DNA from: Podarcis bocagei
Taxonomy: Eukaryota
DNA length: 64,000 nucleotides
Direction: 5' to 3' (one strand)
Assembly: GCA_964188305.1 (NCBI GenBank)
Contig: OZ076888.1
Shown here: one piece after another, positions 4,211 through 52,276 of the stretch
Numbering within the stretch: the stretch's first letter is position 1
Layout of the letters: each line of letters starts with the position of its first letter
Notes under the pieces: generated by a model
Told to the model about the DNA's origin: nothing
Databases searched by the model: none
The model's input: only the letters and a program-made list of their open reading frames with translations
Program-made: the position numbers and the translations under genes

Positions 4211-4561
4211 TCAAATTATTGGTGTGTCTTGGAGCTGAAGTCTTGTCTTAAACTGTGCTTTCAAGGAAGGTTTAGGGCACATACCATAACACAGCCAAGT
4301 TGCTCGTCTGTCCAATATGCATTTGAACACCTCTTCATATGCCATAAATGAATCCTATGTGACAGTTCCAGAGATCAAGGTATTCATCTATGTCTGGATA
4401 CAAATGGGCACCATTTTGATTCAAGGCGGTGGATGGAACCTTTTGAAATTGTGCCAAATTTAACCATTGCTTTCAAAACTGCATTTATTTGTTTGGTTTC
4501 TTGGAATTCCCAAGCAAAGGCAGATACAAGGGCTGCTACTTTTAAATAATTAACCATTCTC

Positions 4562-32914: not shown

Positions 32915-33242
32915 AGTTTGCAGGGCAGCAGTTGAAGAAGGAGCAAAAAGGGTTTTCTTGTGTGTGTTTCTTTGTGGCTGATTAGCTGTTTTCCCTGTGT
33001 AAAGGTCAGAGGGGGCAGGGTTTCTGTTGAGGCAGGGGATTAGCTGTGGGAGGAGCTTATCAGAGTTTGCAGGGCAGCAGTTGAAGAAGGAGCAAAAAGG
33101 GTTTTCTTGTGTGTGTGTGTTTCTTTGTGGCTGATTAGCTGTTCTCCCTGTGCAAAGGTCAGAGGGGGCAGGCTTTCTATTGAGGCAGGGGATTAGCTGT
33201 GGGAGGAGCTTATCAGACCTAGCAGGGCAGCAGTTGAAGAAG
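32915..33242 (+). promoter_or_regulatory. Tandem ~150-bp monomers in CR1 5'UTR (putative internal promoter)
   Basis: Units start at 32915 and 33064 (149 and 153 bp), with a partial third unit at 33217. Promoter function is inferred. Confidence 0.75.
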
Positions 33243-33404
33243 CGCGCGCAGTTTGATCCATCTTTTAGATTTAGGGGAGCTAGTCTCAAACGTTTGTTGG
33301 GGGAGAACTAGGTGTTTTTTTTTGTGGGGGAAGTTATTTGTCCTGTCTTCAAGCTTTTTATGATGGAGGGCCTCTGTAGCCACCCCCAACGACACGATCT
33401 CAAG

Positions 33405-34433
33405 ATGGAAGGGGAGGGAACAGCTGCAGTCACCTGCGATTCCTGCGCAATGTTTGCCATCTTGCCAAAGGTTGCAGGCAGCTTTACCTGCAGCAATTGC
33501 ATGTTGATTGCCCTTTTAAAAGACAAAGTCCAGCAACTGGAGGAACGTGTAGCTACGCTCCAAAGAATTAGAGAGCTGGAGCTCTTCTTGGAAGCAACAG
33601 AGCACACCGTCCCCACCAAGGAGGAGACAGGGGACTCCCCTGAGAAGGAGGCTAGTTCACCAACACAGGAGCCAGATATATGGAGAAACGTGACTCAAAG
33701 AAGTAGGAGGCCCAGGGTTCACTCTGATTGTTTAGAAATACACAATCGCTTTGAGGTCCTCTCCCCTAGCATGGAAGATGAAGAGCAGACTCCATTTGAG
33801 GATCTCTCCCTCATTACAGTCGATCAGGTATACGAAGACGAGCAGCAAAGTCAGTTCTCAGGGAATGTGCAGGCGACCTTGGAACGGACAGCTCACGGAA
33901 GAACCCCGACCAAAGCCAAGAGGAGGCGTGTAGTGGTGATAGGGGATTCCCTACTGAGGGGAACAGAAGCAGTGATCTGTGGGCCTGACAAGATGTCTCG
34001 GGAAGTGTGCTGTCTCCCCGGGGCTAAGATCCAAGATGTAACTGAACGACTGCAAGGAATCATAAAACCCACTGACAAATACCCCTTCCTCTTGGTTCAT
34101 GTGGGAACCAATGACACTGCAAGCAATAGCCTCCAGAAGATCAAAAGAGACTACGAGGCTCTCGGCAGGAAATTGAAGCAACTAAATGCACAAATTGTCA
34201 TCTCGTCTGTCCTCCCAGTTGAACAACGTGGCCCAGGGAGAGAGGGGAAAATAGTGGAAGTGAACAGCTGGCTTCGCAAATGGTGTAAACAGGAACGGTT
34301 TGGATTCTTAGATCACGGACTGCAGTTTCTTGAAGATGGACTTCTGGCAAGTGATGGGCTGCACCTCACAACGGTTGGGAGAAATGTTTTTGCCAAAAAT
34401 CTCAGAAACCTCATCAGGAGGGCTTTAAACTGA
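33405..34433 (+). CDS. CR1 ORF1p: CX2C-X14-CX2C zinc finger, coiled coil, SGNH/GDSL esterase
   Basis: CDSC...[27 protein letters not shown] and SGNH blocks GDSL, PGA, GTND, DGLH. The ATG at 33405 has strong context (AAGATGG); an alternative ATG lies at 33360. Confidence 0.93.
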
Positions 34434-34438
34434 CTAAT

Positions 34439-37360
34439 GTGGGGGAGGGAGACAGTGCTCCTGAAGGTAGGAGTCTATCAATTAATGAAGATGATCATCC
34501 AAATGTCATAGACCAAATGGAGCAAACAGCACGCGGACCTAGTGGTGGGAGGAAAAAATCCTTAAATAAGAGACACGGGGGAATGATTAATGGACTTCAA
34601 TGTCTGTACACTAATGCGCAAAGCATGGGAAATAAACAAGATGAGCTTGAGCTCTTGGTACAGCAAACTAAATATGACATAATAGGCATCACTGAAACCT
34701 GGTGGGATAAGTCCCACGATTGGAATGTAATAATGGGGGGATACAATCTATTTCAGAGAAACAGACCAGACAAGAAAGGAGGAGGAGTGGCGTTATATGT
34801 CAGGGATGTGTATACCTGTGAAGAGATCCAAGATTTAGAACCTCAAAGCCAAAGTGAGAGCATTTGGGTCAAAATTAAGGGAGAGAAGAATAACAGAGAC
34901 CTCATTGTGGGAGTTTACTATAGATCCCCAAGCCAAACGGAGGACATAGATGATGCCTTCCTGGAACAGATGGCCAAGCATGCAAAAGGAAGGGAGATAG
35001 TAGTAATAGGGGACTTCAATTACCCGGATATTTGTTGGACGTCAAACTCAGCCAAGAGCATAAGGTCAAACAGATTCCTCACTGGCCTTGCAGACAACTT
35101 CATTGTCCAGAAAGTGGGAGAAGCAACAAGAGGAACAGCCATTTTAGATCTGGTCCTAACCAATGTTGATGACCTGGTTAGTGGGGTAGATGTGGATGGA
35201 TCATTAGGCACGAGTGATCATGCTCTTCTGAAGTTTACTATACAGCGGAAAGGAGCAGCCAAGCATACTAGGACTCAATTTCTTGACTTTAAGAAAGCCG
35301 ACTTCATAAAACTTAGGGAAGTGCTGGGTGAGATCCCATGGACAGCAATACTAAAAGGAAAGGGAGTTCATGATGGCTGGGAGTTTGTTAAGAGGGAGAT
35401 AGTAAAAGCACAACGTCAGGCAATACCAATGAGACGCAAACATGGAAGGTACCTAAAGAAGCCAGGGTGGCTATCTAAAGAACTTTTAACTGAATTAAGA
35501 TTTAAAAAGGATGTGTACAAAAAATGGAAAAGGGGGGAAACCACCAAAGAGGAATTCAAACAAATAGCCAGCATGTGTAGACACAAAGTCAGAAAAGCTA
35601 AAGCACAGAATGAACTCAGGCTTGCTATAGAGGTTAAAAGCAACAAAAAAGGCTTTTATGGGTATGTTCGTAGCAAAAGGAAGAACAAAGAAACAGTGGG
35701 GTCACTCAGAGGAGAAGATGGTGAAATGCAAACAGGGGACACAGAAAGGGCTGAACTCCTCAATGCCTTCTTTGCCTCAGTCTTCTCCGATAAAGAAAAC
35801 AATGCCCGACCTGAAGAATTTGGAGCAAATGATTCAGCAAAGGAAACACAGCCCAGAATAACTAAGGAGATAGTACAAGAATATCTGGCTAGTTTAGATG
35901 TATTCAAGTCTCCAGGGCCAGATGAACTGCATCCAAGAGTATTAAAAGAACTGGCAGATGTGATCTCAGAACCACTGGCAGTCATCTTTGAGAATTCCTG
36001 GAGAACAGGCGAAGTCCCGGCAGACTGGAGGAGGGCAAATGTTGTCCCTATTTTCAAAAAGGGGGAAAGAGAGGACCCAAATAATTACCGCCCAATCAGT
36101 CTGACATCAATAGCAGGGAAGATTCTGGAGCAGATCATTAAGCAAACAGTCTGTGAGCACCTAGAAAGGAATGCTGTGATCACCAATAGTCAGCATGGAT
36201 TTCTGAAAAATAAGTCATGTCAGACTAACCTGATCTCGTTTTTTGACAGAATTACAAGCCTGGTAGATGAAGGGAACGCAGTGGATGTAGCCTACCTTGA
36301 TTTCAGCAAGGCATTTGACAAGGTGCCCCATGATATTCTTGTAAAGAAGCTGGTAAAATGCGGTCTTGACTATGCTACCACTCAGTGGATTTGTAACTGG
36401 CTGACTGACCGAACCCAAAGGGTGCTCATCAATGGTTCCTCTTCATCCTGGAGAAGAGTGACTAGTGGGGTGCCACAGGGTTCTGTCTTGGGCCCGGTCT
36501 TATTCAACATCTTTATCAACGACTTGGATGATGGACTCAAGGGCATCCTGATCAAATTTGCAGATGACACCAAACTGGGAGGGGTGGCTAACACCCCAGA
36601 GGACAGGAACACACTTCAAAACGACCTTGACAAATTAGAGAACTGGGCAAAAACAAACAAGATGAATTTTAACAGGGAGAAATGTAAAGTATTGCACTTG
36701 GGCAAAAAAAATGAGAGGCACAAATACAAGATGGGTGACACCTGGCTTGAGAGCAGTACATGTGAAAAGGATCTAGGAGTCTTGGTTGACCACAAACTTG
36801 ACATGAGCCAACAGTGTGACGCGGCAGCTAAAAAAGCCACTGCAATTCTGGGCTGCATCAATAGGAGTATAGCATCTAGATCAAGGGAAGTAATAGTGCC
36901 ACTGTATTCTGCTCTGGTCAGACCTCACCTGGAGTACTGTGTCCAGTTCTGGGCACCACAGTTCAAGAAGGACACTGACAAACTGGAACGTGTCCAGAGG
37001 AGGGCAACCAAAATGGTCAAAGGCCTGGAAACGATGCCTTATGAGGAACGGCTAAGGGAGCTGGGCATGTTTAGCCTGGAGAAGAGGAGGTTAAGGGGTG
37101 ATATGATAGCCATGTTCAAATATATAAAAGGATGTCACATAGAGGAGGGAGAAAGATTGTTTTCTGCTGCTCCAGAGAAGCGGACACGGAGCAATGGATC
37201 CAAACTACAAGAAAGAAGATTCCACCTAAACATTAGGAAGAACTTCCTGACAGTAAGAGCTGTTCGACAGTGGAATTTGCTGCCAAGGAGTGTGGTGGAG
37301 TCTCCTACTTTGGAGGTCTTTAAGCAGAGGCTTGACAACCATATGTCAGGAGTGCTCTGA
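34439..37360 (+). CDS. CR1 ORF2p: APE endonuclease + reverse transcriptase
   Basis: 973-aa open frame. EN motifs YTNAQS, GITETW, GDFN, LDL, SDH; RT motifs [24 protein letters not shown]. The frame is open from 34355 and its first ATG is at 34517. Confidence 0.97.
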
Positions 37361-39374
37361 TGGTGTTTCCTGCTTGACAGGGGGTTGGACTCGATGGCCC
37401 TTGTGGTCTCTTCCAACTCTATGATTCTATGATTCTATGATTCTATGATTAACCTATTGCTACGTTCCATTTTTTATATATTTTACATGAATTGTTAGCT
37501 GTTGCAGTGGTAGTTGTTGTTTTGCTATGTTTTGCGCTATTGCAATTATATTAATTATTGTGGAAAGTGCAGTATGTAAATAAACCAGCCATAATGATGA
37601 CTAGCATTGGCAAGTTGCTCTTTCTTAACCTCAGTCCCTAATATTTAAAATGGGAATAATTGTCCCCAGTGACTAATCAATACTGTGGCTGAAATAAAGA
37701 CTGCAAAACACTGTGGGAATAGAACAAAGAAATAGACCATAGGTCTTCTGTACTATATCACTACACTTTGGAAAATTATGCAGTCAGGGAGCATAAAGTT
37801 TATTCTGCAGTTACTGCTCCACTAATATAGTGAATAGCAGGTAATTGCATTTATTCCAATCCTTGCAACTGTTTCTAGTTCTATTAATCATATAATAGGC
37901 TGAGCTAGAACTCTCTTGTGCTAGAATTTATATCTGTTTAAAAGCCCCTCTTTGTCATGAAGGGTAAACTGAATCATTTCCATTCTTTTAAACAAAAGCG
38001 GGCAAATATCACATTCCAGTAAATTGTTTCAGGTAGTTACTTTCCCCCAGTGTTTTTCCAATTAAAGAACAATGCACTTCTGGATGACACAGTGCCTTCA
38101 AAACAGTATCATCTTCTGACTTGCTTTGATGCAATTTATTAAGTCAGAGCTATTTGATGCTACAGTAGTAAGCACAAGCAAGTACCCTGTAGATGATGAA
38201 GAAAAACAAGTTTAGCAGTAAAGCAAATAGAAAATATTGATCTCTCTTTAGATGCTGTAACTGAAAATCTTCTGTAAGATATATCTTCCCTTATTCTCTC
38301 CTGATCAGTGCCCTTCACTATTTGCCAGCAAGAGACACAGAGAGATGAGTGTAACCTTGAACGATACGAAACTTTCATGTAAGCACTGAGAAAAAGAAAG
38401 AACGAAAGACTGGTCCTTTCCATCATCAGAAAGGTTCAATAGTTGCATATAGACTGAGGAAAACTAAAAGGGTGGTTAATTCTCCCAAGTCTTTCTCCAG
38501 TATTGCTGAAATGAGTGCAGACAGCCATTCTATGCAGAATATGAAATGTATCTGATTATGTCTATAGCATAGCTTAATACAGACAGGAAGGATCTGGACA
38601 TGAATAAACCATTAACTGATATTTTAATGTGTGAATACAAGTGGGAAGGCAAGGGTTGTGTGCCTTTGGAAAAAGTGCAAGCACGTTCCCCATGTGACAA
38701 CTTCTGAACTCTTCTGAGTTCAAAAATGTGTGTGTGTTTACTTCACCAGTAACACTGCAGGAGACCTAAGATGCTGAGAAACAGATGTTTAAGATATTTT
38801 CTGTACCACTGAACACTGTTCTTTTTCTGCGCTCTCTAGCATTGCTGTGCATTGGGAAATTATGAGTTGAAATTCATATGTTATTAGCTGCTGCGAAAAA
38901 AATAGACATGCAGTCTTGAGCTTATTATATAACTATAGTGGTGAAAGACTAACTGGGCAAGATGCCAGGGGATGTTAGCATTTTTAAAGGAACTGAGCTC
39001 TGTCAACAATACCTTCGCCATTTCCTTACTGCCAACACATCATGGAAAAAGACTCGAGAGATGGAGTCATGGTGGAAAGGTCCCATGTATTCACATATAA
39101 CAACAGATCACCTGCCGAAACAATAACCAAACAATGTAAGTAGGGGCAGGTGGGTTTGAAGTGACATATATGAGGGAAGCAGCCCTCCATCCCACTAAGT
39201 ATGGCAGTAGCCAAATTCCATGGCTCTCCAGCGAAGGGTTGGGAGAAAATTCTACATACCCGCTAAGTGAGCCTTGGGTATGTAATTCCACCATATGCAC
39301 TCAGACCTTGCTGTCCAGTATTCACCAAGGTGACATATCAGGTCTAAAGTGCAGCCCCAACAACCTTCTAAGCT

Positions 39375-51682: not shown

Positions 51683-52276
51683 CATAGAATCATAGAATCA
51701 TAGAATCATAGAGTTGGAATAGACCACAAGGGCCATCGAGTCCAACCCCCTGCCAAGCAGGAAACACCATCAGAGCACTCCTGACATATGGTTGTCAAGC
51801 CTCTGCTTAAAGACCTCCAAAGAAGGAGACTCCACCACACTCCTTGGCAGCAAATTCCACTGTCGAACAGCTCTTACTGTCAGGAAGTTCTTCCTAATGT
51901 TTAGGTGGAATCTTCTTTCTTGTAGTTTGGATCCATTGCTCTGTGTCCGCTTCTCTGGAGCAGCAGAAAACAACCTTTCTCCCTCCTCTATATGACATCC
52001 TTTTATATATTTGAACATGGCTATCATATCACCCCTTAACCTCCTCTTCTCCAGGCTAAACATGCCCAGCTCCCTTAGCCGTTCCTCATAAGGCATCGTT
52101 TCCAGGCCTTTGACCATTTTGGTTGCCCTCATCTGGACACGTTCCAGTTTGTCAGTGTCCTTCTTGAACTGTGGTGCCCAGAATTGGACACAGTACTCCA
52201 GGTGAGGTCTGACCAGAGCAGAATACAGTGGCACTATTACTTCCCTTGATCTAGATGCTATACTCCTATTGATGCA
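51683..52276 (-). mobile_element. 5'-truncated CR1, same young subfamily as the full-length copy
   Basis: Reverse complement of 36854-37448, with 3 amino-acid differences over ~168 aa and a (CATAGAAT)n tail. Confidence 0.97.

Follow-up and report, generated by a model that had tools for sequence, protein, structure and literature searches.

A conserved U_UUA_AAC heptamer at the ORF1/ORF2 junction of CR1 retrotransposons is a candidate programmed -1 frameshift signal

Introduction

It has long been an open question how a long interspersed nuclear element (LINE) obtains its second protein from a bicistronic RNA, and a CR1 element of the lizard Podarcis bocagei raises it in concrete form: how do ribosomes pass from its first open reading frame (ORF1) to its second (ORF2)? 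The element lies in a stretch of 64,000 nt from contig OZ076888.1 of assembly GCA_964188305.1 (hereafter the window, which contains 665 N), where about 32916-37448 on the plus strand forms an uninterrupted full-length CR1-type LINE, its start (~32916) being approximate. In birds, crocodilians, turtles and many squamates, CR1 predominates among transposable elements. A preliminary description of the window had proposed that ribosomes slip back by one base on a U_UUA_AAC heptamer at the end of ORF1, stimulated by a small pseudoknot, and enter ORF2 in the -1 frame. We compared the junction with those of diverged CR1 elements. The conservation found supports the frameshift, whereas the pseudoknot fails on both shared base pairs and stability, and the comparison makes it likely that the ORF1/ORF2 junction is a selected programmed -1 frameshift signal yielding a fusion of the ORF1 and ORF2 proteins (ORF1p and ORF2p).

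Results

The features that meet at the junction are listed below, with P and A denoting the ribosomal peptidyl and aminoacyl sites.

33360-34433, plus strand: ORF1, 357 amino acids (aa) from the first ATG in a frame open from 33312, identified by translation and Pfam
34424-34430, plus strand: candidate slippery heptamer T_TTA_AAC in ORF1 phase, with UUA in the P site and AAC in the A site before the slip
34431-34433, plus strand: ORF1 stop TGA, immediately 3' of the heptamer
34441-34453, plus strand: G-rich purine tract GGGGGAGGGAGAC, starting 10 nt past the heptamer and reading G-E-G-D in the ORF2 frame
34430-37360, plus strand: ORF2 frame as it would be entered after the slip, 976 codons plus stop

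Re-reading of the sequence reproduced the coordinates and the phase given in the preliminary description. ORF1 ends GCT (34422-34424) TTA (34425-34427) AAC (34428-34430) TGA (34431-34433), and the -1 frame reads TTT AAA CTG ACT AAT GTG GGG and on through 978 stop-free codons from the heptamer to 37360. The last upstream stop of the -1 frame lies 23 codons 5' of the heptamer; the +1 frame closes immediately at the junction. The 973-aa ORF2 described earlier (listed as an ORF at 34439-37360) lies in this -1 frame and encodes, after a linker of 57 aa, an APE-type endonuclease that starts LQCLYTNA and then a reverse transcriptase, with Pfam matches to PF03372 (Exo_endo_phos; 2e-16), PF14529 and PF00078 (RVT_1; 2.1e-35). 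Its first ATG is indeed at 34517, 31 codons past the heptamer and 26 codons before LQCLYTNA. ORF1 encodes a Cys-rich zinc-finger N-terminus followed by a GDSL/SGNH esterase (Pfam PF13472 (GDSL_2), 2.1e-09) and a C-terminus ...RRALN*. Its closest protein is an SGNH-esterase protein of Podarcis muralis (94% identity); the homologues are SGNH-esterase proteins from reptiles, birds and frogs, and their alignment revealed invariant Cys residues in the N-terminus.

A single copy of TTTAAAC says little, because the word occurs 18 times in the window against 14.1 expected, with no enrichment. In-phase X_XXY_YYZ heptamers elsewhere in the examined ORF1s number 0-4 each, and none is conserved in position. 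The heptamer at the junction gains its significance because its position and phase are conserved across diverged elements.

To assemble these elements, we used an ORF1 search that returned 81 relatives, and the DNA of eleven was retrieved. Together with the window copy they form a set of 12: the window, Zootoca vivipara (L001), Chelydra serpentina, Dendrobates tinctorius, Erythrolamprus reginae, Calypte anna and six metagenome/Logan contigs. ORF1 identity to the window ranges from ~31% to 82% (Z. vivipara 82%, the six contigs 31-60%), and one contig (L010), 77% identical to a shark protein, represents a shark-like element. In all 12 elements ORF1 ends TTA AAC followed by TAG or TGA, with ORF2 in the -1 frame and the +1 frame closed. 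T_TTA_AAC is present in 11 of them, the exception being contig L007, in which GAG TTA AAC gives G_TTA_AAC. U_UUA_AAC is among the most shift-prone heptamers on mammalian ribosomes (PMC5009743), and G_UUA_AAC is listed as the equine arteritis virus shift site (Atkins 2016 review, PMC5009743).

A scan of metagenome contigs contributed 60 further junctions, mostly decayed copies and mostly from one sample. TTTAAAC is kept in 53 of these, and the other seven differ by one base. The stop abuts the heptamer in 12/12 elements and at 58/60 further loci, and is TAG in 7/12 and 49/60. At the protein level, 106 of 144 ORF1 homologues end in LN, with squamates, turtles, birds, frogs, sharks and rays represented; the rest are mostly truncated or chimeric gene models.

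Synonymous sites were compared in eleven lineages (the window and L002-L011), L001 from Zootoca being excluded as a close relative of the window. Third-codon-position identity over the 33 codons 5' of the heptamer averages 0.31, near saturation. The Leu at -22 is invariant in these lineages yet is encoded by CTC, CTG, CTT and CTA, and two or three codons occur at each invariant Gly or Asp position. The last two ORF1 codons are TTA AAC in 11/11 lineages; elsewhere in these ORF1s, the share of TTA among Leu codons is 0-13% and that of AAC among Asn codons 27-91%. A change of the final heptamer C to T, silent both in ORF1 (Asn) and in the -1 frame (CTR to TTR, Leu), never occurs. The residue before the Leu is variable (A, T, Y, G, C, S, D), and its codon ends in T at 11/12 and 60/60 loci, being GCT, ACT, TAT, GGT or TGT (five amino acids) in the 12-element set, with GAG in L007, and GCT, ACT, TCT or GAT in the further loci. 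Re-pairing of the P-site tRNA on UUU would require just such a fixed wobble T in a codon that otherwise varies, and this T fits tandem slippage; neither constraint on ORF1p nor a model of initiation further downstream would predict it. Taken together, the codon patterns indicate that selection at the junction acts on nucleotides and not on protein.

Just upstream, ORF1 codons -5 and -4 (34416-34421 in the window, and the same place in L001-L011) are nearly always AGG AGG. The Arg codons at these two positions are AGG in 15 of 17 cases, AGA in two and CGN in none, and purine-rich tracts flank the slip site on both sides. The AGG AGG pair could be part of the signal, or could be due to CpG-poor codon usage.

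We next considered the ORF2 start codon. The linker from the heptamer to the endonuclease motif spans 33-91 codons in the -1 frame and is stop-free in 20/20 elements in which the motif was found. Seven of these 20 (turtle, frog, snake, hummingbird, L007, L062 and L032) have no AUG in the linker; their next Met falls inside the endonuclease, past the conserved YTNA motif, and by homology with APE-type nucleases initiation there would probably give a defective enzyme. Linker AUGs, where present, are not at a constant position. A stop closes the -1 frame 1-2 codons 5' of the heptamer in L008, L010 and L011, within 6 codons in L007 and within 8 in L005; because it closes so near, the frame switch cannot occur much before the heptamer. 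No AUG overlaps the ORF1 stop in the manner of a SART1-type stop-start at any of 12/12 loci (the window junction reads AAC UGA CUA), and the codon overlapping the stop is CUG in TGA-type elements and CUA in TAG-type elements. The preliminary description had suggested aligning such junctions, with the expectation that the heptamer letters and the -1 phase would be conserved and the ORF2 ATG would not. From squamates to the shark-like element this is the pattern observed, in the anatomy of the junction, in its conserved position, phase and letters, and in the unconserved ORF2 AUG.

RNA-seq reads from a related lizard (two runs) span the entire element, with ~45 reads per run across the junction. 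Among the best-supported differences listed, the two runs revealed no indel and no splice joint at the junction, at a depth where a frame change at ~7% or more would be visible and with reads that are uninformative on copy of origin and on translation. A change of frame at the RNA level, whether by slippage, editing or splicing, was rejected on this basis. Motifs resembling 5' splice sites are present 35-70 nt past the junction in several lineages, including AAG|GTAGGA at 34465-34474 in the window, GAG|GTAAGT in turtle (L002, ~4546-4556), AAG|GTACGA in hummingbird and AAG|GTAAGC in L008; splice joints from these motifs were absent from the RNA reads of both runs. Among public gene models, P0076, P0118 and P0122 (tortoise, stingray) read ...GFKL... 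across the junction in the -1 frame into the endonuclease. These apparent fusions are probably prediction artefacts or indel copies and do not count as evidence of frameshifting, but they illustrate that ORF1-ORF2 "fusions" already arise in annotation.

Most of the efficient eukaryotic -1 sites carry a 3' stem-loop or pseudoknot, usually after a spacer of 5-9 nt. For the window, the preliminary description had proposed pairing of GGGAG (34443-34447) with CTCCT (34458-34462) and of AGAC (34450-34453) with GTCT (34473-34476). The letters are present as described; the structure they were thought to form was rejected as a stimulator. RNAalifold returned 0 consensus pairs for 16 aligned junctions from the heptamer to +100 nt, and the minimum free energy of 34431-34510 is -16.1 kcal/mol, against -16.5 +/- 2.9 for shuffled sequences (z 0.14). 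The 80-nt downstream segments of the other elements have z values of ~-1.6 to +1.8 against dinucleotide shuffles, again with no excess stability. These tests modelled nested folds, and a weak lineage-specific pseudoknot would lie outside their reach. No pseudoknot or stable hairpin was found at ~5-9 nt 3' of the heptamer, and the Rfam search returned no frameshift element, its sole match being a sub-threshold snoRNA-like one on the minus strand.

What is conserved downstream is the purine tract. It begins 9-11 nt past the heptamer in 12/12 elements, for example as GGGGGAGGG, GGGGAAGG or GGGAAGGG, and the motif GGG N0-3 GG occurs at 9-11 nt at 12/12 loci, against a base rate of 0.0063 per nt in these elements. 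In L008, L010 and L032 the tract holds its distance to the heptamer despite a different codon phase, which suggests that it acts at the RNA level. Two ways in which the tract might act in cis were rejected. A long-range partner, as in barley yellow dwarf virus, was sought with RNAduplex, which found pyrimidine-rich partners at -16 to -23 kcal/mol in inconsistent positions (best partners at ~-690 nt in the window, +2820 in L002, -250 in L003 and -775 in L005). A cis G-quadruplex was set aside as well: visual inspection gave mostly just two or three G runs per tract, fewer than a canonical intramolecular quadruplex needs. We infer that the stimulator would consist of the adjacent stop and the linear G-rich tract at 9-11 nt, to which a protein might bind, and not of a pseudoknot.

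The remaining parts of the element are its untranslated regions (UTRs).

32916-33359, plus strand: CR1 5' UTR, identified by sequence reading and self-BLAST
37361-37448, plus strand: CR1 3' UTR, a GC-rich hairpin-like segment and a (ATGATTCT)n octamer microsatellite tail

The 5' UTR contains a direct repeat with a unit of ~149 bp, for which self-BLAST aligned 32915-33089 with 33064-33242 at 93.9% identity over 179 bp. Some RNA reads have joints that drop or duplicate one such unit (32966 to 33242; 33221 back to 32920), and because these joints skip or repeat one unit, the number of units appears to vary among copies. In addition, seven RNA reads from the two runs join 33231 to 36433, that is, the 5' UTR to the 3' part of ORF2 with 3201 nt skipped; this joint is probably that of a genomic, internally deleted, non-autonomous CR1 derivative. 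At the other end, the (ATGATTCT)n tail lies at ~37420-37448, after the GC-rich segment, and there is no poly(A)-type end. A short hairpin-like UTR and an 8-nt microsatellite in place of poly(A) are typical of CR1 3' ends. The element thus combines the features of the CR1 clade, namely an ORF2 with APE-type endonuclease and reverse transcriptase, a zinc-finger/esterase ORF1 and a microsatellite-type 3' end.

A 5'-truncated CR1 copy is present in the window at 51683-52276 on the minus strand. It is 98.65% identical to 36854-37447 and shares the same 3' endpoint, which fits recent activity of the family. Two CR1 ORF1 esterases among the homologues (P0046 and P0089) are filed in NCBI under Klebsiella pneumoniae and Pseudomonas aeruginosa as "SGNH/GDSL hydrolase family protein", from contigs of 3-4 kb; they are almost certainly vertebrate DNA contaminating bacterial assemblies.

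Discussion

From the conserved anatomy of the junction we infer the slippage itself and how efficient it is, as well as what the stop and the G tract contribute and what becomes of the fusion. Most ribosomes would decode UUA-AAC and terminate at the adjacent UGA, releasing ORF1p with its zinc finger and esterase. A minority would slip one base back on U_UUA_AAC, re-pairing from UUA to UUU in the P site and from AAC to AAA in the A site, and would proceed through CUG-ACU-AAU-GUG-GGG and the 57-residue linker into the endonuclease and reverse transcriptase. The predicted product is an ORF1p-linker-endonuclease-reverse transcriptase fusion of 357 + 976 = 1333 aa from ATG 33360; the preliminary description had predicted the same fusion, with a size of ~1320 aa that is slightly too small. 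As in retroviral Gag-Pol, the fusion would be made at a fixed low ratio.

Several points weigh against programmed frameshifting. The evidence for it is wholly comparative; the 60 further loci, largely from a single sample, lack independence; and the window copy itself carries an ORF2-frame ATG, at 34517. Neither conserved pairs nor unusual stability were found downstream of the heptamer. The G tract starts beyond the usual 5-9 nt spacer, and it usually encodes a conserved G-E-G peptide, so that a protein-level reason for its conservation is possible. Mammalian L1 provides a LINE precedent for AUG-independent initiation, in which ORF2p is made without a fusion and without need of its AUG (PMC5009743, PMC3894237). 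Finally, the arrangement is not universal, because in an element of the teleost Sparus aurata with an esterase ORF1, which ends TGT TTA AAG CAG GTT TGA, the long ORF2 occupies the +1 frame and has an ATG.

Three teleost ORF1 homologues lack the LN end. Comparison across these sequences indicates that the arrangement belongs to the CR1 lineage of tetrapods and cartilaginous fish and not to every esterase-type LINE. Because one teleost relative ends ...RCLKQV, the esterase fold need not end at LN. The Sparus aurata element (L092, 4340-4373) has an in-phase T_TTA_AAG three codons before its stop, which may be a relic of a CR1-type site.

Among other explanations, ORF2 might be reached as in L1, by termination and reinitiation or by another AUG-independent initiation, with the block AGGAGGGCTTTAAACTRR ... 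GGGGGARGGG holding and restarting the ribosome and the likeness to a slippery heptamer being coincidental. In one variant, ribosomes could restart at the CUG that overlaps the stop (C-UGA) in TGA-type elements, the window included. Such a mechanism would accord with a stop that always abuts the heptamer and so fixes termination at one spot, with the lack of classical 3' structure at the junction, and with a conserved G-rich tract near the stop, which could tether 40S subunits; the ORF2 AUG would be dispensable, as reported for L1 (PMC5009743, PMC3894237). It leaves unexplained, however, why a T precedes TTA whatever the amino acid, why the Leu is always TTA and why the Asn is always AAC, all of which follow the rules of tandem slippage. 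The CUG start is moreover not conserved, since the TAG-type stop turns it into CUA in 49/60 and 7/12 loci, and reinitiation after a long ORF1 was judged improbable in a 2013 review (PMC3894237). We consider this explanation unlikely.

Somewhat less credible is independent translation of ORF2 from ATG 34517, by leaky scanning, an internal ribosome entry site, or a subgenomic or spliced RNA, with the TTTAAAC-stop-G-tract block serving another purpose. As part of that improbable account, the block might serve for binding by ORF1p or for packaging, might meet a structural need of the C-terminus of ORF1p, or might be a signal read in the DNA. In-frame ATGs 5' of the endonuclease domain in the window and several other copies are compatible with it, as are the splice-site-like motifs 35-70 nt downstream in some elements; on the other hand, the ATG is missing in 7/20 elements and variable in position in the others, and the RNA reads contain no splice joint or indel at the junction. 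The esterase C-terminal helix ...LIRRALN is conserved as protein, which speaks for this account, yet constraint on protein can dictate neither the choice among synonymous codons nor the third base where the codon varies, and the teleost ...RCLKQV end argues that the esterase does not require LN. Nor does independent initiation need the stretch from heptamer to ATG to be stop-free in the -1 frame, as it is. That the heptamer is a functionless chance occurrence in one copy, as the count of TTTAAAC in the window (18 against 14 expected) and the 0-4 in-phase heptamers elsewhere in the ORF1s would allow, has next to no probability and is already refuted by comparison, position, phase and letters being kept in 12/12 lineages and 53/60 copies amid saturated synonymous sites and no other in-phase heptamer being conserved in position.

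Programmed frameshifting can also be put in a bolder form, which we hold to be doubtful: the CR1 reverse transcriptase may have been made as a fusion since before the split of sharks and tetrapods, with slippage on U_UUA_AAC driven by the abutting stop and by a G tract read by a trans-acting protein, either a host G-tract binder or CR1 ORF1p. If the tract were bound by CR1 ORF1p, ORF2 output would be self-regulating.

To the question of how LINE ORF2 is translated, the CR1 heptamer offers a concrete and cheaply testable answer for this clade. If frameshifting is confirmed, a fusion of ~150 kDa would put the esterase/zinc-finger module and the endonuclease-reverse transcriptase on one chain, and annotation of CR1 ORF2 should begin at the heptamer and not at the first ATG. 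Vertebrate nuclear genomes would then express, at this junction, a -1 frameshift site that is both rare and deeply conserved, and its conserved stop and G tract, acting without a pseudoknot, would offer the recoding field a stimulator of a possibly new type. New to the description of the junction are the conserved adjacent stop and the G tract. Overlapping -1 ORFs have an early record in some insect LINEs of the Jockey/CR1 group. Reviews on the translation of non-LTR (long terminal repeat) elements discuss HeT-A, TART, L1 and SART1, with ORF2 translation unresolved for L1 (PMC5009743, PMC3894237). The open literature searched contains no mention of CR1 frameshifting; the original CR1 descriptions (Haas 1997, Kajikawa 1997, Kapitonov and Jurka 2003) lie outside it, and a prior remark is possible. 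Frameshifting or ORF overlap is likewise unmentioned in Suh 2014, Metcalfe and Casane 2014, Schneider 2013 and a 2026 survey of CR1-group elements.

Among the known systems close to CR1, the coronavirus ORF1a/1b junction (infectious bronchitis virus, severe acute respiratory syndrome coronavirus) has the same U_UUA_AAC in the same phase and a -1-frame polymerase ORF that extends the upstream product; the G_UUA_AAC of equine arteritis virus, an arterivirus, is the form found in the CR1 variant L007. Unlike these viruses, CR1 has no conserved pseudoknot or hairpin at 5-9 nt, its 0-frame stop is adjacent in place of a longer overlap, and a linear G-rich tract follows at 9-11 nt. There is no sequence homology past the heptamer and no match to an Rfam frameshift element, and the host is a nuclear LINE and not an RNA virus. 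The Gag-Pol arrangement of retroviruses and LTR elements follows the same logic, with an abundant nucleic-acid-binding first product and a rare reverse transcriptase fusion whose ratio depends on slippage where the first ORF ends. CR1 differs in that its ORF1p is a zinc-finger/esterase protein and does not form capsids, no protease is present to split the fusion, and the element belongs to the non-LTR class, which uses target-primed reverse transcription.

A stop that abuts the heptamer occurs in luteo- and dianthoviruses, plant viruses in which the signal depends on a neighbouring stem-loop and on pairing over a long range. The same placement is described for some mycoviruses. In the viruses with an abutting stop, as in CR1, the heptamer makes up the last two sense codons of ORF1, and the ORFs are described as non-overlapping; the heptamer and the host differ, and CR1 has no long-range partner at a consistent position. 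Linear 3' stimulators that depend on a protein are the C-rich motif of the arterivirus PRRSV (the virus of porcine reproductive and respiratory syndrome) and the 2A-binding element of cardioviruses (PMC5009743). Like the CR1 tract, each is a short, conserved, unstructured motif placed further out than a classical pseudoknot; the CR1 motif is G-rich and not C-rich and starts at 9-11 nt, and the likeness is one of resemblance only, a similar mode of action being conceivable. Finally, mammalian L1, with its AUG-independent termination/reinitiation, and SART1, with its UAAUG stop-start, are LINEs that, like CR1, have bicistronic RNAs and an ORF2 free of conventional AUG dependence. Those elements use no slippery heptamer and make no fusion, whereas CR1 has no AUG over the stop and combines a fixed -1 frame with a conserved heptamer.

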